Assembly (NCBI GenBank): GCA_024626585.2
Contig: JANKJI020000004.1
Coordinates: 167,612,669 to 167,633,764, forward strand
Source of the DNA: Ginkgo biloba
Lineage: Eukaryota; Plantae; Ginkgophyta
Length of the DNA: 21,096 nucleotides
Direction of reading: 5' to 3'
How positions within the stretch are numbered: position 1 is the first letter of the stretch; each line of letters opens with the position of its first letter. The notes under the pieces are model-generated. The model searched no databases. It saw only the letters and a program-made list of their open reading frames with translations, and was not told where the DNA came from. A program made the translations under genes and the position numbers. Below are positions 3,839 through 21,020 of the stretch, one piece after another.

Positions 3839-5130
3839 TTAGGAGACATTCTTTCAAGGTCTTCGAAGACACTTGCATACTTATGAAGTATGCCATCAAG
3901 TTGTCTTTGTTGTGCTACATCTTGGACAGTTGAATTTGCATAATTTGCAAGAGTTGTGTCATTCAATCATCAAGGTGTATTTGGTGTTGGTCTAGGCCTT
4001 TCTCTAAACGACCATCTCGCTCACTTTCATCTTCTTCTGTAGATCTTTCGGGCCATTCACGTTAATCTCCTCCTAACCTCTTGCTCGATTGAGCTTCTTC
4101 TTGAGCTCATTAAGTTGGTTAGTTCTCATATATGTTAGTAACAATGGATTTTGTAGTTACTCTCCTTCTTGGTATTTGGAACAAGTTCAAACCATTCAAG
4201 ATTTAAATCATCACTCAAGTAGTATTGAATCTATGGGTATGATATCAAAATATAATTAAGACTTAAGAATTGTTTGTTTCCCAGTATTAGAAAAACTAGG
4301 GTCTAATACCAAAATATGATCCAGAACCCAAAATGTGCAGAACAGGAGTAAGTTTGAATTTTTAAAAAATCACATTCGCAAGTAAAGATCATATTTATAA
4401 CATATTACTTAAGTAAAGCAACAATGAATTGTTCTTTATATAAAATATATGGGTGGAATCACAACCCACAAATCACAGAGTTCTTTATCCCTTGAAATGG
4501 GATTAAAAATCAGAGTACACAAGAATGTTGCATCATCCAAGGATCAACTCGCATTTGTATATAGATTTGGAAGCTAAATTGCTTGGAAAATCGTAGGCTA
4601 TCGCCAAGAACATAGAAATTGGAATCGTAAGATTTTGCTTGGTGAAGAAAAACACAGGAAGTCTCAACTTGAAAAATCTAAACCCCCTACTTCTGAGCTC
4701 TCGAGAGCTTTTATCCTCTCCAAAGGCAACTCTTGAATCAATTATAAAAACTGTTTGTTTCAATTTCTTGAAGTTGGTTGATGTAGCATTTCGTAGCCTT
4801 TTTGCCATGTCGTAAATTTTTAATAGTTTCTTGCGACTTAGGTAATCTTTTGCAATAGTGCATATTTGGCATTGCTTGGTGCTTGTTGCGTCACTTTCGA
4901 CCATATCGCAGTTGTTTGGCTATTGTTCGCGATATTGGTTTTTTCATGCGACGGTGAATCTTGAGTCATTTGGCACTTATGGTGTCACTTTGACCATATT
5001 GCAGCCTTTTGGGTATTGTTTGCGATATTGGCTTTTTCATGCAATGGTGAATCTTTAGCGCTGATATGATGGTGAATCTTTAGCGTTGCTAGGAACTTAT
5101 CACGTCACTTTGACCATATCATATCATTTT
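3839..5130 (-). mobile_element. Decayed Ty3/Gypsy-like LTR retrotransposon fragment
   Basis: GGTCTAATACCA at 4300-4311 is 10/12 to the reverse-complement PBS GCTCTGATACCA, with LTR-like DNA to its right. The minus-strand peptide ILHKYASVFEDLERMSP (about 3840-3890) resembles the protease-RT linker (LL.EF.DVF.EP.GLPP) of Ty3/Gypsy pol. Boundaries are approximate. Confidence 0.5.
4890..5120 (+). repeat. Tandem repeat of about 94 bp (two copies plus the start of a third) with a nested 25-bp-period duplication
   Basis: GTCACTTT(C)GACCATAT starts at 4890, 4984 and 5104. ATGGTGAATCTTTAGCG occurs at 5044 and 5069. Confidence 0.85.
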
Positions 5131-5999
5131 CTTGCTTTTTACTAAACTGGCACATTCTTGCGATTCGGTGACTTCTTTGTGACTTGGGCAAATTGTTGCG
5201 ACGAGCACTTTTATTAGTAGAAAATCATAGAACTTTAAGATTTCAAACTGAAAATAGGTCTTACGGTTCTTCCAGGCTGCAAAGCCTAGACATTCGCCAG
5301 GGGCATTCCCCTTGAACCTTGCAAAGCAGAACCTAGAAAAACATTGGAAAATTGGGTACCAAATCTGGCTATTGAATGGGGCCAATTTTAAGACCATTTT
5401 TGTGGCTTATTCATGAGATTATCAACTTCTTGCCACTTCTGAAATGGAAGCTGACAAGTGTCCTTCCTCTTTAGTTCCAACCCGAATCATCTAGATGCAA
5501 TGGAACCTATATCTTGGGGACCTGTTGGATAAGGTGCTGAAACAGTGTTGGAGCATTGGAGTCTACATTGCCTTCAGAGACTTGGCCATCAGTTAAACTA
5601 TCTTTGGCATCTGATGTTCTATAGGGCAATTGTAACTTTCTGCAGTTCCTCCTTTGTTCACAAGTTTACTTGCTTATCTTTGAATGGTTGTTGATGCTTT
5701 TCGCTTTGATCCTTATTGTAACCAATAGATGCCTAAACATCTCTTTCTTTGTAATTTTTTTGCAACATAATGAGCTAGAACTGCTTTTATAACATCATTG
5801 TTTAGGGTGGTTCTATTGAATTTCCTTTATTGGATCAAGATGCTGTTTCCTGTTGTCATTGTTGTTCTTTCCCTTTTATATAGATATTGGCAAGAGCAAG
5901 GCCTATCATGGTAGACCAAAATTGCTATCAGCTTGGATACATTAAATTGCTTGCTAATAAGTCTGCCCATGCTATTGTTTTTCTGCAGGACCAAAGACA

Positions 6000-6188
6000 A
6001 TGGGGCAAGCATTATGCTGTGTACAAGTTGAACAGTCGACAGTGGCCATGAAAGAAAGATTTGGACGGTTTGAGGAAGTCCTTGATCCGGGGTGTCATTT
6101 TGTGCCTTGGTGCTTTGGTAGCCAAATTGTAGGTCGTCTTTCCTTGCGAGTACAGAAACTGGATGTACGCTGTGAAACGAAGAGCAAG
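6000..6188 (+). CDS. HIR: HIR (SPFH/band-7) first coding exon, copy A
   Basis: Translates [63 protein letters not shown], matching the plant HIR N-terminus I recall (MGxxxCCVQVDQSTVAIKE.[36 protein letters not shown]). Acceptor TTTTTCTGCAG ends at 5988, with a CTAAT branch-like motif at 5954-5958 and an 11-nt leader. Donor AAG|GTATAT at 6188/6189, phase 0. Confidence 0.9.
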
Positions 6189-7453
6189 GTATATGGTTGT
6201 TTTTATAGGGTTTCATGCAACTTAATCTTCAAGGCTAGAATCCTTGAATGTATACTTTAGATCACTATTTGTTTTGAAGGCTTAATAAGCAATTGCAGCT
6301 GCTAAGGTAGTGTCGCTATTTATTGTGACTGCTGACAATTTTGTTTTAGTTTAGTTCAAGAAAGCGAGTTTTGTTCATTATATTTTTCATGGCATTAATG
6401 CTACTGTTGTTAGNNNNNNNNNNNNNNNNNNNNNNNNNNNNNNNNNNNNNNNNNNNNNNNNNNNNNNNNNNNNNNNNNNNNNNNNNNNNNNNNNNNNNNN
6501 NNNNNNNNNNNNNTTGCCTCTTAAGGAAATGGGAGTCATGGTTGGTTTTCTGGAAGGTTCTTGAGTACTGAACTTTGAAGTTTAATAGAACCACTTTTTT
6601 CTTTCAAAAAGGAGAGAAAGAAGATGGGGATGTGATAGAGTGTTCCAGTTAATACAAAGGGTTTACAGCTTCAAGTAGATTTTTCTTTAGATACAGACTC
6701 TAGAGTCTATCTATTGGGAGTGTGGTGTGTTCTTGATGCTGCATATTTGATGCACTGTTCACAGCCTCTAGTTGCAACTATCATGGAATGATCTTTGGTC
6801 GGAAGAAGATTGAGCTGTCTGTCTTCAGTTGCAACAATATAGATAATCTTCAGTGGCAGCAGGTTGCCAGTCGCANNNNNNNNNNNNNNNNNNNNNNNNN
6901 NNNNNNNNNNTGCATTAGTGTCTAGTCACAACACCTCACTTGGTCGCTATGCAGCATATTATACTTCAGTCATCAATATTTAAGGAAAACTAGTTGTAAT
7001 TAGATAAAATGAAGGATAAACAAATGAAGATGACTCTTTGTATAGCCATTATGAAAAGACATGCAAAATGTATTTATATCAAGTTATCAATGTAGACAGG
7101 CATCCATCTGTTCATTGACTGTATTCTTATCTATGTATGTATTTATGATGTACTCTGATTGGAATATAAGATAATCCATTTTCCAGACTTCAACCTCGAG
7201 ATTCCTAAAGGATGCCATGCGGTGTTGGTGAAAGCAACACGGCATGTCTCCTCTTCACATGGCAAGGGTATGCTTGCAATCATGTTCTCTGCACATACTC
7301 ATTGGCAGTTGGTTAACCTTGCTGGAGCAGACTGCAGAAAACATGTTCTCTAGTTAATTTGTCTTTGAGTACTTCCATTTGCAAATTCTCTGGTTGTTTA
7401 TAAAATGGTCATTAAATCCAGTTATGTTGTTGCGTGGATGTAGAATAAGCAAT

Positions 7454-7642
7454 ATGGGGCAATTATGTTGCTGCATACAAGTAGAACAGTCGTCAGTGGC
7501 TATGAAAGAGAGATTTGGACGCTTTGAGGAAGTTCTTGAGCCAGGATGCCATTGTCTGCCTTGGATTTTTGGGAGCCAAGTAGGAGGGCACCTTTCGTTG
7601 CGCGTACAGAAGCTGGATGTGCGCTGTGAAACAAAGACCAAG
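7454..7642 (+). CDS. HIR: HIR (SPFH/band-7) first coding exon, copy B
   Basis: Translates [63 protein letters not shown]. Likely acceptor TGTAG ends at 7443 (10-nt leader). Donor AAG|GTATAA at 7642/7643, phase 0, followed by a 289-nt intron to the next exon. Confidence 0.93.
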
Positions 7643-7931
7643 GTATAAGATCTTTTTCTATTTTAGGATTTAGTACAAGCAGGGCTTAATTGAAAAATTC
7701 AGTCTATATGTGCTCTTGATGGTACCAATCTTTGTGTTTAACGAGCTTAATTTTTCCCAGCAAAGTGGGCATCATATTTGAAAATAAAATGAAAATCAAG
7801 CTTAGTCTACTTAAAAAATGTGAAAACTGTAAGCATTGTTGGAATTTCCTATAGTGTCTTGAGCTAGGTGGATGGATATTAGATGTTTTTAGTGAAACAT
7901 GACCTTACTTGGAAATTATGTGATGTTGCAG

Positions 7932-8052
7932 GATAATGTGTTTGTGACAGTGATTGCATCTGTGCAATACCGTGCCCTTTTAGATAAAGCAAGTGATGCC
8001 TTTTATAAGCTCAACAATACAAGGGAGCAAATTCAAGCCTATGTCTTTGATG
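7932..8052 (+). CDS. HIR: HIR second coding exon
   Basis: Acceptor GTTGCAG ends at 7931. Reads [40 protein letters not shown] plus one G, the canonical HIR continuation after ETKTK. Donor G|GTAAAT at 8052/8053, phase 1. Not in the ORF track. Confidence 0.95.
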
Positions 8053-8747
8053 GTAAATTTTAGAATATAAACACTCTCCCTCTATCTCAGACGTGTTGTT
8101 TACCAGTAGAAGAAGTTTGCACAAAGCGAAGTCTGAATACTCTTTCCTAGCAATTCTCTCTACTGATCACTGTGTTTCACAGATTAGGGTTTCTCTCTGC
8201 CAAATTTAATAGATTTATGACTGTTCTTTTCCTATTTCCTGAAAATTGAATTCTTGAATTAAATAGGCGAATAAGTGTGTGTGTGTTTCAAATTTAGTTA
8301 GGGGGTCATAACTACTCCCCTCCTCATAGACCTCATTGTTTTAGTTCAATCAAAGAACTCTGGAAGCTTCTATGGGATGAGAATGTTTCCATGTATTTAC
8401 ATTTCTTGAATGTTTTCCCAGTTGGTGAGGAACTGGTGCAAAATGCTGTTTCTAGGTTCTTTTCATGTCAAATTGTTATTTTCTCTAGATTAAATTGTAC
8501 TTCACCTTTTTCATCCAAAATTTGTAGCTCTTGGGCCAACGTTTTTATCATTGATTTGCGAAATTCATCATGAGTCCTGATGGTTGCTGAAAGCTTCAAC
8601 CTGTGAGTTCTTTAGCCAATTTTGTAATTGCTTAAAAGGATCTGAAATACCTAAGCTTGAAGTTTCTTCATTGACTATACTCTAAGTGAAAAAAAAACAA
8701 AAACAAAAAAACTCAGCATCTACTTTGTTATGAACCTAAACCTTATT

Positions 8748-8860
8748 TTAGGTCATATGCATATCAGTCACAGATAATGTAGATGAGTAACTAATCAGAT
8801 GTGTTAGGTCACATGTATATCAGCCAGGGTCAATGTAGATGAGTACCTAATCAGATATAT
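8748..8860 (+). repeat. 56-bp tandem duplication, possibly inside a solo LTR (about 8726-9037)
   Basis: TTAGGTCATATGCATATCAG...AATGTAGATGAGTAACTAATCAGAT at 8748 and TTAGGTCACATGTATATCAG...AATGTAGATGAGTACCTAATCAGAT at 8804. The surrounding segment starts TGTTATGA (8726) and ends TCGTAATA (9037), an imperfect terminal inverted repeat; no TSD seen. Confidence 0.8.
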
Positions 8861-10367
8861 CAGGACTCTTACCCATGGAGCTTTAATCAATCAATCGGGA
8901 TCTTATTAGCTTGCAGATTTGATTAGGCTTTTAGTGTTGATGAGGGAAAGGTGGATAAGGTCACTATTCTTGGTTCAGTTTTATGAGGGTGTTTTGTTAA
9001 TATAGCTAGCACGAATATTTCCCAGGATCTCGTAATAATAACTAAAAACTGCGAAAAAAGAAATTTGTTGCACATTTGGAACTTTGCCTGAGTCGAACTA
9101 CTTGGACTGCTGTTTAACTATTATAAACAATACTGAGCTGAACATTTGAGTAAATGAGATACATGTTCTCTGGTATGACTCTCATCTGTGCCCTGTTTTC
9201 TGTTCGTAGAGTGATCATCACCTAGTGTATCGGTAGGCTGGCATTTTATAGTGTCTGCACCTGCTATTTAATAGAGTTCAGGGAATGAGTAGAGCAACTG
9301 GCCATTTTCTTACAGCATTGCTTTTAAGAAGCTGATGGCCAGTCATGCAATTGTTTCATCATCATAGAGAATAAGGTGGCACGGAGAGAATTATTTTATG
9401 ATCAATTTCTATATTATTGCAATTCTATGTTCATCGCAGACCAAGTAGCTGCAAGCTTTACACAAGTAGCCCCTAGGCTTAGTATGTCCTGCATGAGATT
9501 TTAACTCTCGCCATTTGGTGAAAGGGATTGCTCTTCACCAGTTGGACTTAACTGTGGGGACTTGAAGTTAGTCACTCATTAAGTCATCTTTGTCAAGTTT
9601 TTGTTTCTTGAAAAAGATGCTTGCTTTAGTCTGAGCTTCTTGATTACAAGCAGCACAATTGAAGCTAAAGCTAGATTATGCTATTCTGTGGAGACAAAGG
9701 TTTTAATGACTGCCTAATAGAAATTTGTACTCGTACTTGAAGCATTCTAAGTAAATGCTTCTGGCTATTTAAACACACAGAATTTCTGGTTATGGTATCT
9801 TCTAACCAGATATCTATGACATGGAGGTTAAAATGATCAATTGAAACAGCTTAGAATCAAATTACTTGTCATCGTGCAAGGGGATTTAGAGATTTGCATC
9901 CGTTCTCTTTTCCATGGTTTGGCCTGCTAACAGGATAACTTCCATTATATCCCCAATGTTCCATCATAGCTTGTTTTGTGTCTAATTAAATTTCAAATTT
10001 GTTGGAACTTTAATTGTGTTCTAGCAAAGTGATCATTAGGTATTGAGTTTAGAACCTGACAAGGAGTTTGAGTGTGTGTTATCCTTTTCTTGATCAAGGG
10101 ATCAAGGTGCCTTCCGTTTATAAGGACTATATTCTAAAGCTTAGGAACATTGGTTTCTTCAGAATTCTAGGATGCGTAACATGTCACCTGCATGTATCTA
10201 GCTCTCCATGGCAAGAATCATGAATAGAAACAAACACTCTGAAGAATATCTCCTCGAGTAAGTGCTATTCATGCATAGTAGCATGCACAGCAAATACACT
10301 ATATCACAAATGTTGCCCATTGATTGACATTCACATGAACACTCATTTTATGACATTGAAGGACTTA

Positions 10368-10838
10368 TGTAGTGGCCTTTTAGGGTTTCACTTCTCAAAT
10401 GGACCATAAAACAATATAATTCCTCCAATTATAGAAGAATACGCATGAAACATTTACTAGACAATGATAAAGCCACAACTTATCATAAGGGACTCATTTG
10501 AGTCCAAAAGATCACAAGGGGCTCGCTTGATTTCAAAAGTTCGAAATAACTAATAAGCAAATGCTCTACAAAATATATTCTAAAGTTACAATTATGATTA
10601 CAAATGAGGCTCGAGTGGCCTTATATGGGCCACCACTTATGTCTACATAATCATCACAATTAGCCACAATCATATACATGGTTTGGGAGACATAATATGC
10701 TATCTACTTCTAATATGCCTTTCCTTCAAAGTCTATGTCTCCATCATCCAATCACACTTCCACATCTATAAACTATAGTATTGGCTAATTCAGGGTCTCG
10801 GGTGCGAAGCCCACCACTAGCAAAGGGTTAGCATTATA
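10368..10838 (-). repeat. LTR copy (3' LTR of the 10368-17301 element)
   Basis: Shares blocks such as TAGGGTTTCACT.CTCAAATGGACC, CCAATTATAGAAGAATAC.CATGAA, ATCATAAGGGACTCA, GAGTCCAAAAGATCACAA and TACAAATGAGGCT with 16732-17301. Confidence 0.85.
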
Positions 10839-11660
10839 ATAATGAGGAATGCATACATTAAGAATAAGAGATTCATAAAGCATGGAGATAAATGGACACA
10901 CTTGTGGGGTACAATCCTCATTTATTATCATTGATTACATGGTACATTGTACAAATGCCTAAGGATAGGCCCCTCTCACACCTAACTATAAACACTTGTT
11001 CTCAACTGTCACATCTTACGTTGTTTTTCTCTCTCCTATTCGTATTGATTTATCTCTCATAAATGATGTATGACATGTCTCTTCTCTTTATTCTAAGTGT
11101 CATAACCCTAAAAGTGACTCCATTAATTACAAGATCATGGTTCATTTAATGCCTTATTAACCGCTTCATTAATTGCCTCTTTAGTGTCTCTTAAATGCAT
11201 GCACTATTATGTCTTTATTGTATGAAGAGATTGTACGGTTAGTGCGGGCAGCCTGTACAAATCCATATCGATAGGTGTATGGACATCTTATAGATTGCAC
11301 GAATCGTACATGCATACGAACAACGATAATCTATTGCCATGTCATTAACAATCTACCATGTCATTATTTGGTCTTGCTTTGTCATCATTTCTGTTGCTTA
11401 CATCATCATGCAAACCTACTTACATCATCATGTTGGTTTCATCCTATCATCTTGCTTATTTTACCATGTCATATGCAAATTTTGTCGTGTTATCTACTAA
11501 TTTTACCATATCACATGCTTTTCATCATGTTGGTTTCCATGTCATATGCATCATTTGCCATCTCATAGTTATCCTATTAACATCTCGTGGTACACTATTA
11601 TTTCAACTGTCTTTGCTCAAGTAAGATGAGCAAAAGGTTTTGGATTTGTAAGAGCTTAAG

Positions 11661-11794
11661 CATTAGGTGGGGTTAATATGTCTCCTATTTACCTATTAAT
11701 ATGGCTCCTATTTACCAATTAATATGCCTCCCATTTAAGTTATAGGAGCTACAACTTAATATGTCTCCCATTTACCAAATAACCCCACCTAATG
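11661..11794. repeat. 15-bp perfect inverted repeat enclosing four 23-bp direct repeats
   Basis: CATTAGGTGGGGTTA (11661-11675) and TAACCCCACCTAATG (11780-11794). Units TTAATATG.CTCC.ATTTACC.A start at 11673, 11696, 11719 (truncated) and 11756. Confidence 0.9.
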
Positions 11795-12881
11795 TGCTCA
11801 AAAAGAAATTGAGCCTTCACTGCTTGAAGTCCCTTTGCCTCTTCTCTTAATCTTTGTGCTTCTTCTCTTTTAGCTTTTGCCTCTTTTTCAACTAATTCAA
11901 GTGCTTCTTTCATTGCCAGAAAACAATCCTTCTTTGTTTTAGGATTTGGAAAATTGGTCTTGGTCGTGATAACGGTTTTGGCCTTCTTTCCAATATGTGT
12001 TCGTTGTGCATTGTCAGGCATTTTACTAACTAAATATACTCCCTTATTCTTCTTTGAACAATTTTTAGAAGTNNNNNNNNNNNNNNNNNNNNNNNNNNNN
12101 NNNNNNNNNNNNNNNNNNNNNNNNNNNNNNNNNNNNNNNNNNNCATTATTTCCACCATTATGAATGTTGTCTCCGTTGCAAGTACCACTATCATTAATGT
12201 TGCCTTTGTCATTGTTACAATTAAAGTTCCTTGCACCATTGTTACCATTAAAGTTACTTTTGTCATTATGATTGTTGTTATTGAAATTATTGAAGTTGAA
12301 GTGACTACCAATGCTAGATCTACCATTATTTTGATTGTTGCTAAAATATTGGTTATCAAATCCAACAAANNNNNNNNNNNNNNNNNNNNNNNNNNNNNNN
12401 NNNNNNNNNNNNNNNNNNNNNNNNNNNNNNNNNNNNNNNNNNNNNNNNNNNNNNNNNNNNNNNNNNNNNNNNNNNNNNNNNNNNNNNNNNNNNNNNNNNN
12501 NNNNNNNNNNNNNNNNNNNNNNNNNNNNNNNNNNNNNNNNNNNNNNNNNNNNNNNNNNNNNNNNNNNNNNNNNNNNNNNNNNACATGAATACTAATTGAG
12601 CTTGCTAGCTCCTTACAATCGTAGGTTGAATTGTCGCCATTGGGGCTATTATCAATTTTGATTTCACCCTTATAGTTGGGCTTATGTACTTCAGCTTCCA
12701 CGGTCTCTGCTACACACTGGTGTGATGATTCAGATTATGAGTTTGTAGTAGACTCAAAAGATACTAATGCACTTGGTAAATTGCCCTTAATGCCATAGCT
12801 AATTTTTGTAAATGCAAGGCAGTCTACATCATAAGTAATAATATTGCTTTTCCACTTTGGCATAATGGAAAGGTATAATGC

Positions 12882-13198
12882 CCACCAATCTTGCAAGGAT
12901 TTAGTCCTGTGTAACCACTCTTGGCCTAATAGTGCAGGATATGACCTACCTTAGCNNNNNNNNNNNNNNNNNNNNNNTACCACCTTTGCAATAGTAATGG
13001 GAACATTCTTGATAGTACGAAGGGTTGTACTCAGGATTAATCAATTATGGTTAAGGTATAATTTGCAGGTATCGTGGTTGGACTACTAATGGCTTTTCAC
13101 ATGTTTTTTGCAAGGACATTAATAGAAGAACTGCCATCAACAATTGCCTTGTCCACTATATAGCCCAAAAGTTGCATGGATACATAAGGTTCATGATC
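12882..13198 (-). pseudogene. Retrotransposon aspartic protease (retropepsin), decayed
   Basis: Minus strand reads DHEPYVSMQLLGYIVDKAIVDGSSSINVLAKNM*... (catalytic Asp codon at 13136-13138, cf. VDGGSSVN), then IKNVPITIAKV, and after a small gap SYPALLGQEWLHRTKSLQDW (cf. SY..LLGRPWL). In-frame stops are present. Confidence 0.85.
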
Positions 13199-13549
13199 CA
13201 ATTTTGGGTTTATGTGTCAGAATGGAAGTGGTTTTTACATTTTTAAGAACACGTATTATCTACTGCAATTGTGTGGGTTCCTAATACTAGATTAGGATGG
13301 ATAATGGAATGCTTAAATTTAAATCGTTAAGAAATTGCGTCAAAATTGCCAATTTCCACTCCTTGGTTAATATGGTGGGTATTAATGGCTCCATTGGTGT
13401 TGTTGCAATTACCTCAGGAATTGGTGTCGACATCTCAAGTTCGATGGAAGAAACTGTCGGTGTTGATGTCTCTTTTGGAGGTTTATTTTTTATTTTTAAG
13501 TACTAGGGGAATCGGTAGGCAAAGCCAATTTTCTTGCCACAGATGATGG

Positions 13550-13682
13550 TTCAAGCTGGCCCACCCCTATAAACCCTAGTCGCGGGCAAGTGACCCCTCA
13601 CTATCCACGGGTGGTAAATTGAGGGGAATGGAACCTCAGTCCGGTGGGTATCAACCCAAAGCCGCGACCGTTGCGCCAAATC
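13550..13682 (-). mobile_element. tRNA-derived SINE-like element with Pol III A and B boxes; 5' end lost in gap
   Basis: Minus strand has TGGCGCAACGG (13678-13668), a full match to A-box TRGCNNARYGG. After a 32-nt spacer comes GGTTCCATTCC (13635-13625), one mismatch to B-box GGTTCGANNCC. A TGGGT/ACCCA stem sits at the anticodon-arm position. GC- and CpG-rich relative to flanks. Confidence 0.6.
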
Positions 13683-16731: not shown

Positions 16732-17301
16732 TGTAGTGATCCATTAGGGTTTCACTACTCAAATGGACCCTAAAATGATATAACTCCACCAATTATAGAA
16801 GAATACACATGAATCATACACCATGCAATAATAAAATCTCATTTTAAAATCCAAAAGCTCAGAATATGGTCGTTATTCATATCATAAGGGACTCACTAGA
16901 GTCCAAAAGATCACAATGGACTTTCCTGAGTCCAAATGTTCAAAATGAGCGAATGCTCCACAAAATATTCTAGAGTAACAATACAAATGAGGCTTGAACA
17001 CCTTTATATACCTAAAATGGCCCCCTTCAACCTAAACCTTAGCGTACCTTTGTATAGGCCTTAATATATCTTTCTAGAGCACTATTTGTGGTTACCCTTA
17101 TAAATATGGGCACTATTTATCCCTACATAAATTTCACATTTATTCACAATCGTTTATGTAGTTTGGAGGGCACAACATGCCATCTCCTCTTAATATGCTT
17201 TGGCCTCAAAGCATGGGTCACCATTGTCCATTCACACTTCACATCTATGGACTATAGGAACACTTACTAGGATCTAGGAGTTTCCCCTTGGGTTCATTAC
17301 A
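16732..17301 (-). repeat. LTR copy (5' LTR of the 10368-17301 element)
   Basis: TGTAGTG...CATTACA termini, adjacent degenerate PBS. About 100 bp longer than the other copy because of indels. Confidence 0.85.
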
Positions 17302-19784: not shown

Positions 19785-20216
19785 ATGGAAGGAAAGATCC
19801 CAGAATGGCACACCTCCACCTATGATAGATTGGATTTCAAGATCAACCACATGGATGACAAAATTAAGGGCATGAATAGTGAAATGAAAGACATAAAGAG
19901 GAATGTAGATAACATGTTAGACCAACTCAATCAAATTCTCGAACAACTTCGTACACGTCCAAAAAGAATAAGTAGAAGCTCAAACAACCAAGGCAAGAGA
20001 CAACTGGTATCAATAGAACGACTACAAGCCAAATTACTGCATGAATGGAAGGAGGTTGAAAAAGTTGCAACACATGTAGAAATCCATGCTGAGATTCATC
20101 GAATGTCCAAGGGCATACTCGAAGAACAATGCGATGAAGATGTAGCAACTCAAGAGAATACTCATCAATCTAATGATCATGCACCGCCTGTAATCTTGAG
20201 GTTTGTACAGTTCTAG
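19785..20216 (+). CDS. 143-aa ORF with N-terminal coiled coil, probably the gag N-terminus of a + strand LTR element
   Basis: True ATG, no gaps, heptad-like LDFKINHMDDKIKGMNSEMKDIKRNVDNMLDQLNQILEQL. Preceded by CACCACA (possible LTR end, 19708-19714) and TAGTATCGAAGT (8/12 to the iMet PBS). No family recognised. Confidence 0.35.
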   Translation: MEGKIPEWHTSTYDRLDFKINHMDDKIKGMNSEMKDIKRNVDNMLDQLNQILEQLRTRPKRISRSSNNQGKRQLVSIERLQAKLLHEWKEVEKVATHVEIHAEIHRMSKGILEEQCDEDVATQENTHQSNDHAPPVILRFVQF

Positions 20217-20349: not shown

Positions 20350-21020
20350 GTCCTTTGGCATCGTTCACACCATTTTTTACTTCCCTTTACTTTTGTTGGT
20401 ATTTTGCTTCCCGCNNNNNNNNNNNNNNNNNCGAATCTTTAGCTTTTCGGTTTCCTCCAATAGTTTTTCAATTTTTGCATCCTTCGTCTCTTCTTTAGGC
20501 TTGGGATTTTTGGATTGCATAGCCTCTTTACTGACGTTCCAACATGAAGGATCTCCACCTACAGAATATTTTCTTGTCATACTTTTCTGTGGTTCGACCT
20601 AGTCTTCATAAGTGAATGCTAGGTCTCGACCTTGTTCATAGGTTTGCATAGGTAGTAGTCTAACTTTCTCCTAGTAAATTGGGAGTAATCCGTCTGCAAA
20701 ATTGTTCATTAGTGCTACTCTACCGNNNNNNNNNNNNNNNNNNNTTTTTTCCACTAGCACTTGTAACCTTCTGTTGTAATTTCGTATAGTCTCATCCAGG
20801 CCTTGCTTGATCTGTAAGATCTGATATCGATCCAAGAATAATTCTCTCACTTTGAACCATGGCTTGCACTGGATGCATTCGAACCATTGTAATGCGATGC
20901 TGCACAATGTGGAGAAGAATTTTCTTTTGATTAGGTTCTCGTCTTGGATCTCGTATTGCTAAATGTAATTTTGGAATAGGGCTAGATGCTTCAATGAATC
21001 TTTGTGCCCTTCATATTTTA
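20350..21020 (-). pseudogene. Retrotransposon gag (capsid domain plus degenerate Zn-knuckle start)
   Basis: KYEGHKDSLKHLALFQNYI*QYEIQDENLIKRKFFSTLCSIALQWF...WFKVRELFLDRYQILQIKQGLDETIRNYNRRL...FADGLLP fits the retrotransposon gag pattern (Y.G..DP..HL..F; F..TL...A..WF; IKQ...E.+..Y..RF; F..GL). WCERCQ near 20355-20372 looks like the start of a CCHC knuckle. Stops are present. Confidence 0.85.

Follow-up and report, generated by a model that had tools for sequence, protein, structure and literature searches.

The window analysed here, 21,096 nucleotides of Ginkgo biloba DNA (GCA_024626585.2, contig JANKJI020000004.1, positions 167,612,669 to 167,633,764), contains two homologous HIR (Band 7/SPFH) first coding exons, referred to as exons A and B, followed by an HIR exon 2 (table 1). 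The two share one architecture, as described in the first-pass annotation, comprising 189 nt of coding sequence, an AG acceptor (5987-5988 for A, 7442-7443 for B), an ATG start codon and a phase-0 donor (AAG followed by GTAT). Recomputation returned the same divergence as reported there, with 12 of 63 amino acids differing and 16 synonymous codon differences, and neither a stop codon nor an indel. At the nucleotide level A and B differ at 34 positions over 189 nt (blastn E 1e-51), and the comparison of nonsynonymous and synonymous rates that had been proposed as a check gives a dS of 0.70, a dN of 0.11 and an omega of 0.16 (Nei-Gojobori).

Table 1. Features of the HIR locus and its surrounding gaps (window coordinates)
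Feature	Position	Strand	Description
Exon A	5989..6188	+	11-nt leader, then HIR first coding exon (CDS 6000-6188); acceptor strong
Post-A stretch	6189..6413	+	225 nt, GT...AG, ending at the gap edge; possibly the complete intron 1 of a paralogue A
100-N gap	6414..6513		100 N, true length unknown; parts the piece with A (3839-6413) from the piece with B and exon 2 (6514-13682)
Sized gap	6876..6910		35 N; at face value too short for HIR exon 2 (121 nt)
Degenerate echo of the exon B start	7419..7445	+	27 nt, 41 nt upstream of B; 21/27 identical
Exon B	7444..7642	+	10-nt leader and first coding exon; CDS 7454-7642; weak acceptor
Intron 1 of the B gene	7643..7931	+	289 nt, GT-AG
HIR exon 2	7932..8052	+	121 nt; 39/40 identical to Gb_35019

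Both exons match the Pfam family Band_7 (PF01145), A with an E value of 2.9e-06 and B with 8.1e-04, the latter scoring below the curated cut-off as a 63-aa piece. They are assigned to HIR on the strength of the N-terminal Band_7 match and of their high identity to HIRs already annotated. HIR genes are laid out as a UTR intron, a 189-nt exon, a phase-0 intron, a 121-nt exon and three further exons, and the first two coding exons of the window match those of two HIR loci (L001 and L002). In the protein searches the window exons were entered singly rather than as a joined spliced model, and in one alignment (A3) exons A and B were paired only with a C-terminal part from Amborella. A profile search weighted to exons A and B returned Ginkgo biloba Gb_35019 (EukProt EP01018) as the best non-query match, which is identical to exon B at 63 of 63 positions (residues 1-63) and to exon A at 51 of 63. 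Gb_35019 makes no use of exon A and differs from the window at codon 91, where the window has AAC (Asn), Gb_35019 has Ser and four relatives have AGC. Asn91 occurs in none of 202 other HIRs, all of which carry Ser or Thr at this position, and can be an allele, a base error or the mark of a second gene copy. HIR exons 3-5 are absent from the window, with no exon 3 found in the 4 kb of gap-free sequence after exon 2.

The first-pass annotation described a single exon 2 shared by A and B. Just one is visible in the window, although as a statement about the chromosome this is not confirmed given that a 100-N gap intervenes between A and B. Seven 100-N gaps occur in the window and bound pieces of 1662-7169 nt, whereas the sized gaps leave pieces as short as 226 nt (permutation p 0.007 for the difference in piece length, a post hoc comparison). 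The large size of the pieces makes the 100-N gaps look like placeholders joining separately built pieces, while the 35-N gap upstream of B looks like an ordinary sized gap. The window has one gap per 1.5 kb, as against one per 15.6 kb for the assembly of Guan 2019, and may therefore derive from a different assembly or tree. Findings spanning any 100-N gap in this genome should be treated as unjoined. The piece carrying A ends directly after an AG, 225 nt past the A donor, precisely where an exon 2 belonging to A would start; of the 14 left gap edges in the window, no other ends in AG. Intron 1 measures 87-523 nt in 34 HIR loci and 225 and 237 nt in two relatives. Scored with an acceptor matrix built from 34 sites, the gap-edge AG ranks in the top 1.6% of window positions, yet at only the 12th percentile among true acceptors. 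Its position is suggestive of an acceptor for A's own exon 2 but not decisive; the piece could instead have been cut short by a transposon.

The introns flanking A and B had been described as showing no visible similarity, which holds for the 3' halves of intron 1 and for the upstream introns, where none was detectable. It does not hold for the first ∼100 nt past the two donors, which are homologous (z 3.2-3.5 against dinucleotide shuffles, p 0.002-0.004, for a segment picked after viewing the alignment). Judging from this alignment, the duplication reached at least ∼100 nt into intron 1. The acceptors of the two exons are of very different strength, that of A ranking in the top 0.02% and that of B being weak. 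The best non-self match within the window is the degenerate echo of the start of exon B, which contains B's apparent acceptor AG together with an in-frame upstream ATG at 7424. Since the echo supplies the apparent AG, the true acceptor of B may sit elsewhere, for example at 7337 or 7421.

An old duplication with both copies under purifying selection, as proposed in the first-pass annotation, is supported by a codon model, by the divergence between A and B and by residue conservation. Fitting the codon model to seven exon-1 sequences gives A an omega of 0.14-0.19 across three trees, significantly under 1 (p about 0.001 or less) and no different from the background; a weaker four-taxon fit (omega 0.34, p 0.17) is not distinguishable from 1. 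Each of the 12 residues specific to A is found in some other HIR, and A, like B, conserves 30 of the 31 near-invariant columns. Simulated neutral exons of this length survive intact in 22% of runs at 0.05 substitutions per site and in 0.4% at 0.2. Selection, residues, acceptor strength and simulations together indicate that exon A was functional through most of its history, though it may have died recently. The A/B split runs deep: the internal branch lying above the split from other gymnosperm-type sequences has a dS of about 0.07, and A and B are about as far apart as either is from the conifer-type orthologues, whose genes are compact. Monophyly of A and B is neither established nor rejected (p-AU 0.166). 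Equal length and phase, intactness and selection are the features expected in sequence of homologous alternative first exons, and A and B have them all. The evidence for selection fits an alternative exon and a separate gene alike.

Conifers offer a close comparison. In Cryptomeria japonica a single chromosome bears four members of this clade (XP_057832335, -336, -351/-353 and -358) that differ along their whole length; the three that were measured span 2.3-4.3 kb each and lie more than 10 kb apart, with no other complete copy within 10 kb. These copies and the 3.7 kb Taxus gene KI387_017216 belong to the same gymnosperm clade as the window exons. Among the Cryptomeria copies, exon 1 is variable (48-53/63 identical) and exon 2 nearly constant (39-40/40), as in the window, and the divergence of A from B falls within this tandem-array pattern. 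Unlike the visible arrangement in the window, the annotated conifer genes are complete and separate. In three conifer-type transcripts exon 2 is also the part most alike at synonymous sites (pS 0.04-0.15 versus 0.15-0.31 in exon 1, from few sites). Whole-gene copies are found elsewhere too, with two in Amborella bearing adjacent locus tags and two whole genes at each of two further loci (L075 and L080), while Taxus additionally has a degenerate partial copy. The A/B arrangement itself was not found in relatives, the conifer orthologues being whole-gene copies. A lone second exon 1 was seen at none of 84 related loci, a survey of limited power in that ∼34 were genomic, many with short flanks, and most were angiosperm-type or transcripts, with no cycad genomic DNA. 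The Cryptomeria “isoforms X1/X2” are not exon-1 alternatives as they differ only by an N-terminal extension, and one candidate member of the gymnosperm clade (P0036) proved not to belong to it. The Cryptomeria annotation (GCA_030272615.1) also includes a 286-aa Band_7 model running from the start of the first gene to the end of the last, which is probably a chimeric annotation across the array, the alternative being real cross-array splicing. The closest relative at hand is a transcript (L004, Logan SRR10765199), possibly from a cycad, encoding a protein 95% identical to Gb_35019 with one extra N-terminal residue; its 5' UTR has no match in the window.

In the reading we favor, A and B each open the coding sequence of one of two old HIR paralogues arranged in tandem, the remainder of the A gene being unassembled; we would put its chances at about even. 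Exon B and exon 2 would be the start of Gb_35019 or of a near-identical copy, and A the start of an upstream sister gene with its own exons 2-5. These exons, together with the promoter and 5'-UTR exon of B, would lie in the 100-N join or elsewhere in the assembly. The gap edge, the nature of the 100-N joins and the whole-gene arrays of conifers favor a paralogue remainder hidden in the gap, without proving it. A and B sit on separate pieces bounded by 100-N gaps, the piece with A ends in an AG at a distance within the range of HIR intron 1, and homology between the copies continues into that intron. Cryptomeria, Amborella and the two further loci all have whole-gene copies, and the loci surveyed hold no lone exon 1. 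The age of the A/B split near that of the conifer-type split points the same way, as does the abundance of tandem clusters in Ginkgo (PMC5118899). Against this reading, the best 120 matches of a search tuned to rank a full-length A-type Ginkgo protein at the top include none. The reading also requires that 1-4 kb or more of gene sequence, presumably unique, be absent or misplaced together with a promoter, although A and B are neighbors in the same orientation. Among true acceptors the gap-edge AG would rank low (bottom 12%), no homology to the intron after B is detectable in the 3' half of the one after A, a transposon could equally have ended A's piece, and the gap could be short.

Other searches for products of A were also negative. 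No transcript or protein with exon A was found at any length searched, a weak negative since Ginkgo sequence derived from reads seems to be sparse in the collection. No public Ginkgo gene model matching exon A was found, the gene model on record having the B form only, and the read-through ORFs of A and B had no match in an exact look-up. Expression of a gene beginning with exon A is, like the content of the gap, a prediction of the two-paralogue reading, which itself draws on the observed exon identity, selection, gap-edge position and conifer arrays.

The arrangement proposed in the first-pass annotation, one gene with two N-termini in which A and B are each spliced to the single exon 2, is a clearly less probable alternative. 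Its likeliest origin would be the collapse of a tandem array that deleted exons 2-5 of A and left the promoter. Because A's promoter would be retained, the choice between the exons would be made by alternative promoters rather than by classical mutually exclusive splicing, and given the weak acceptor of B, transcripts from the A promoter would skip B. This is in keeping with the intactness of A and its very strong acceptor, with the low omega of A in the seven-sequence model and its 12 HIR-like specific residues, and with the lack of a visible second exon 2 or of a full-length A protein among the matches found. Inclusion of both exons would shift the frame, with a stop after codon 90 (frame read from the joined sequence), and such a premature stop would suit exons that are alternatives, although the frame shift is automatic given the UTR leader. 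A gymnosperm precedent exists in the DAL19-clade MADS genes of Picea abies, in which mutually exclusive first exons on a shared core were established by three RNA methods (PMC6243048). As in the one-gene model of A and B, these are homologous alternative first coding exons, but in a different protein family. Speaking against a single gene, no transcript joining A to exon 2 was found, the arrangement rests on a gap of unknown length and it was seen at none of the other HIR loci examined. A separate gene would lead one to expect selection on A just as much, and a scan of the window revealed no convincing inverted repeats of the docking/selector type.

It is rather unlikely that A is an orphan, a first exon left over from a paralogue whose downstream exons were lost recently, and no longer in use. 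The four-taxon fit and the simulated intactness at 0.05 substitutions per site leave room for a recent loss, and the partial copy in Taxus illustrates such decay. The stretch from B to exon 2 could in turn be a recent, truncated copy of Gb_35019, in line with the unmatched Asn91 and the lack of an exon 3 in the gap-free sequence that follows. Exon A nevertheless has no lesion in its frame, start codon, Gly2, Cys6/Cys7 or splice sites, and simulated intactness becomes rare by 0.2 substitutions per site. Asn91 may be an allele or base error, and as 12% of Ginkgo introns exceed 20 kb, a distant exon 3 would be normal.

Very improbable is a two-exon cassette, in which a short gap hides a second exon 2, and A or B, each with its exon 2, feed shared exons 3-5; the piece with A ends in an AG at a distance typical of intron 1, a gap of a few hundred bases would fit, and exon 2, which varies least between paralogues, could have interrupted an assembly from short reads, but nothing past the gap resembles intron 2, no HIR locus provides a precedent, and both a hidden exon and alternative splicing are needed.

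On any of these readings the products would, to judge from Arabidopsis HIR2, be SPFH scaffolds with a lipid anchor. Exons A and B both keep Gly2, Cys6, Cys7 and Cys58, and with Gly2 and Cys6/Cys7 both carry the lipidation motif. They differ in three other cysteines, Cys5 and Cys34 being found only in B and Cys38 only in A. Arabidopsis HIR2 has the same four residues in the same N-terminal SPFH segment and, unlike the pair in the window, a single first coding exon as far as described. S-acylation of HIR2 at either Cys6 or Cys7 is enough to target it to the plasma membrane, and oligomerization is driven by the C-terminus (PMC13157961). Under the favored reading of two tandem paralogues, each gene would thus be predicted to encode an ordinary plasma-membrane SPFH scaffold anchored through Gly2 and Cys6/Cys7.

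Two tandem paralogues would add an unannotated, selection-maintained HIR gene to Ginkgo, and would be a warning that an exon pair lying on either side of a 100-N join in this assembly can pass for alternative splicing. Were a junction from A to exon 2 to be found instead, the locus would represent a tandem gene array turning into an alternative-exon gene. One locus would then yield two SPFH subunits whose membrane-facing N-termini differ at 12 residues, including three cysteines, on a common oligomerization tail, and the two nanodomain scaffold isoforms could co-assemble. No report of HIR genes being alternatively spliced in this way came up in literature searches. Even if real here, mutually exclusive first exons are not a new kind of arrangement given the spruce MADS genes, and the finding would extend that precedent to an immunity-linked membrane family.

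Elsewhere in the window, three ORFs (11752-12591 on the reverse strand, 19785-20213 on the forward strand and 20380-20958 on the reverse strand) have a transposon-derived look, being Asn-rich, coiled-coil and gag-like by eye, with nothing above the cut-off in Pfam. Positions 10368-10778 and 16732-17257 form a diverged direct repeat pair with segments 68-80% identical, probably transposon ends. Upstream of exon A, positions 4855-5120 consist of short degenerate direct repeats with a period of about 90-100 nt.
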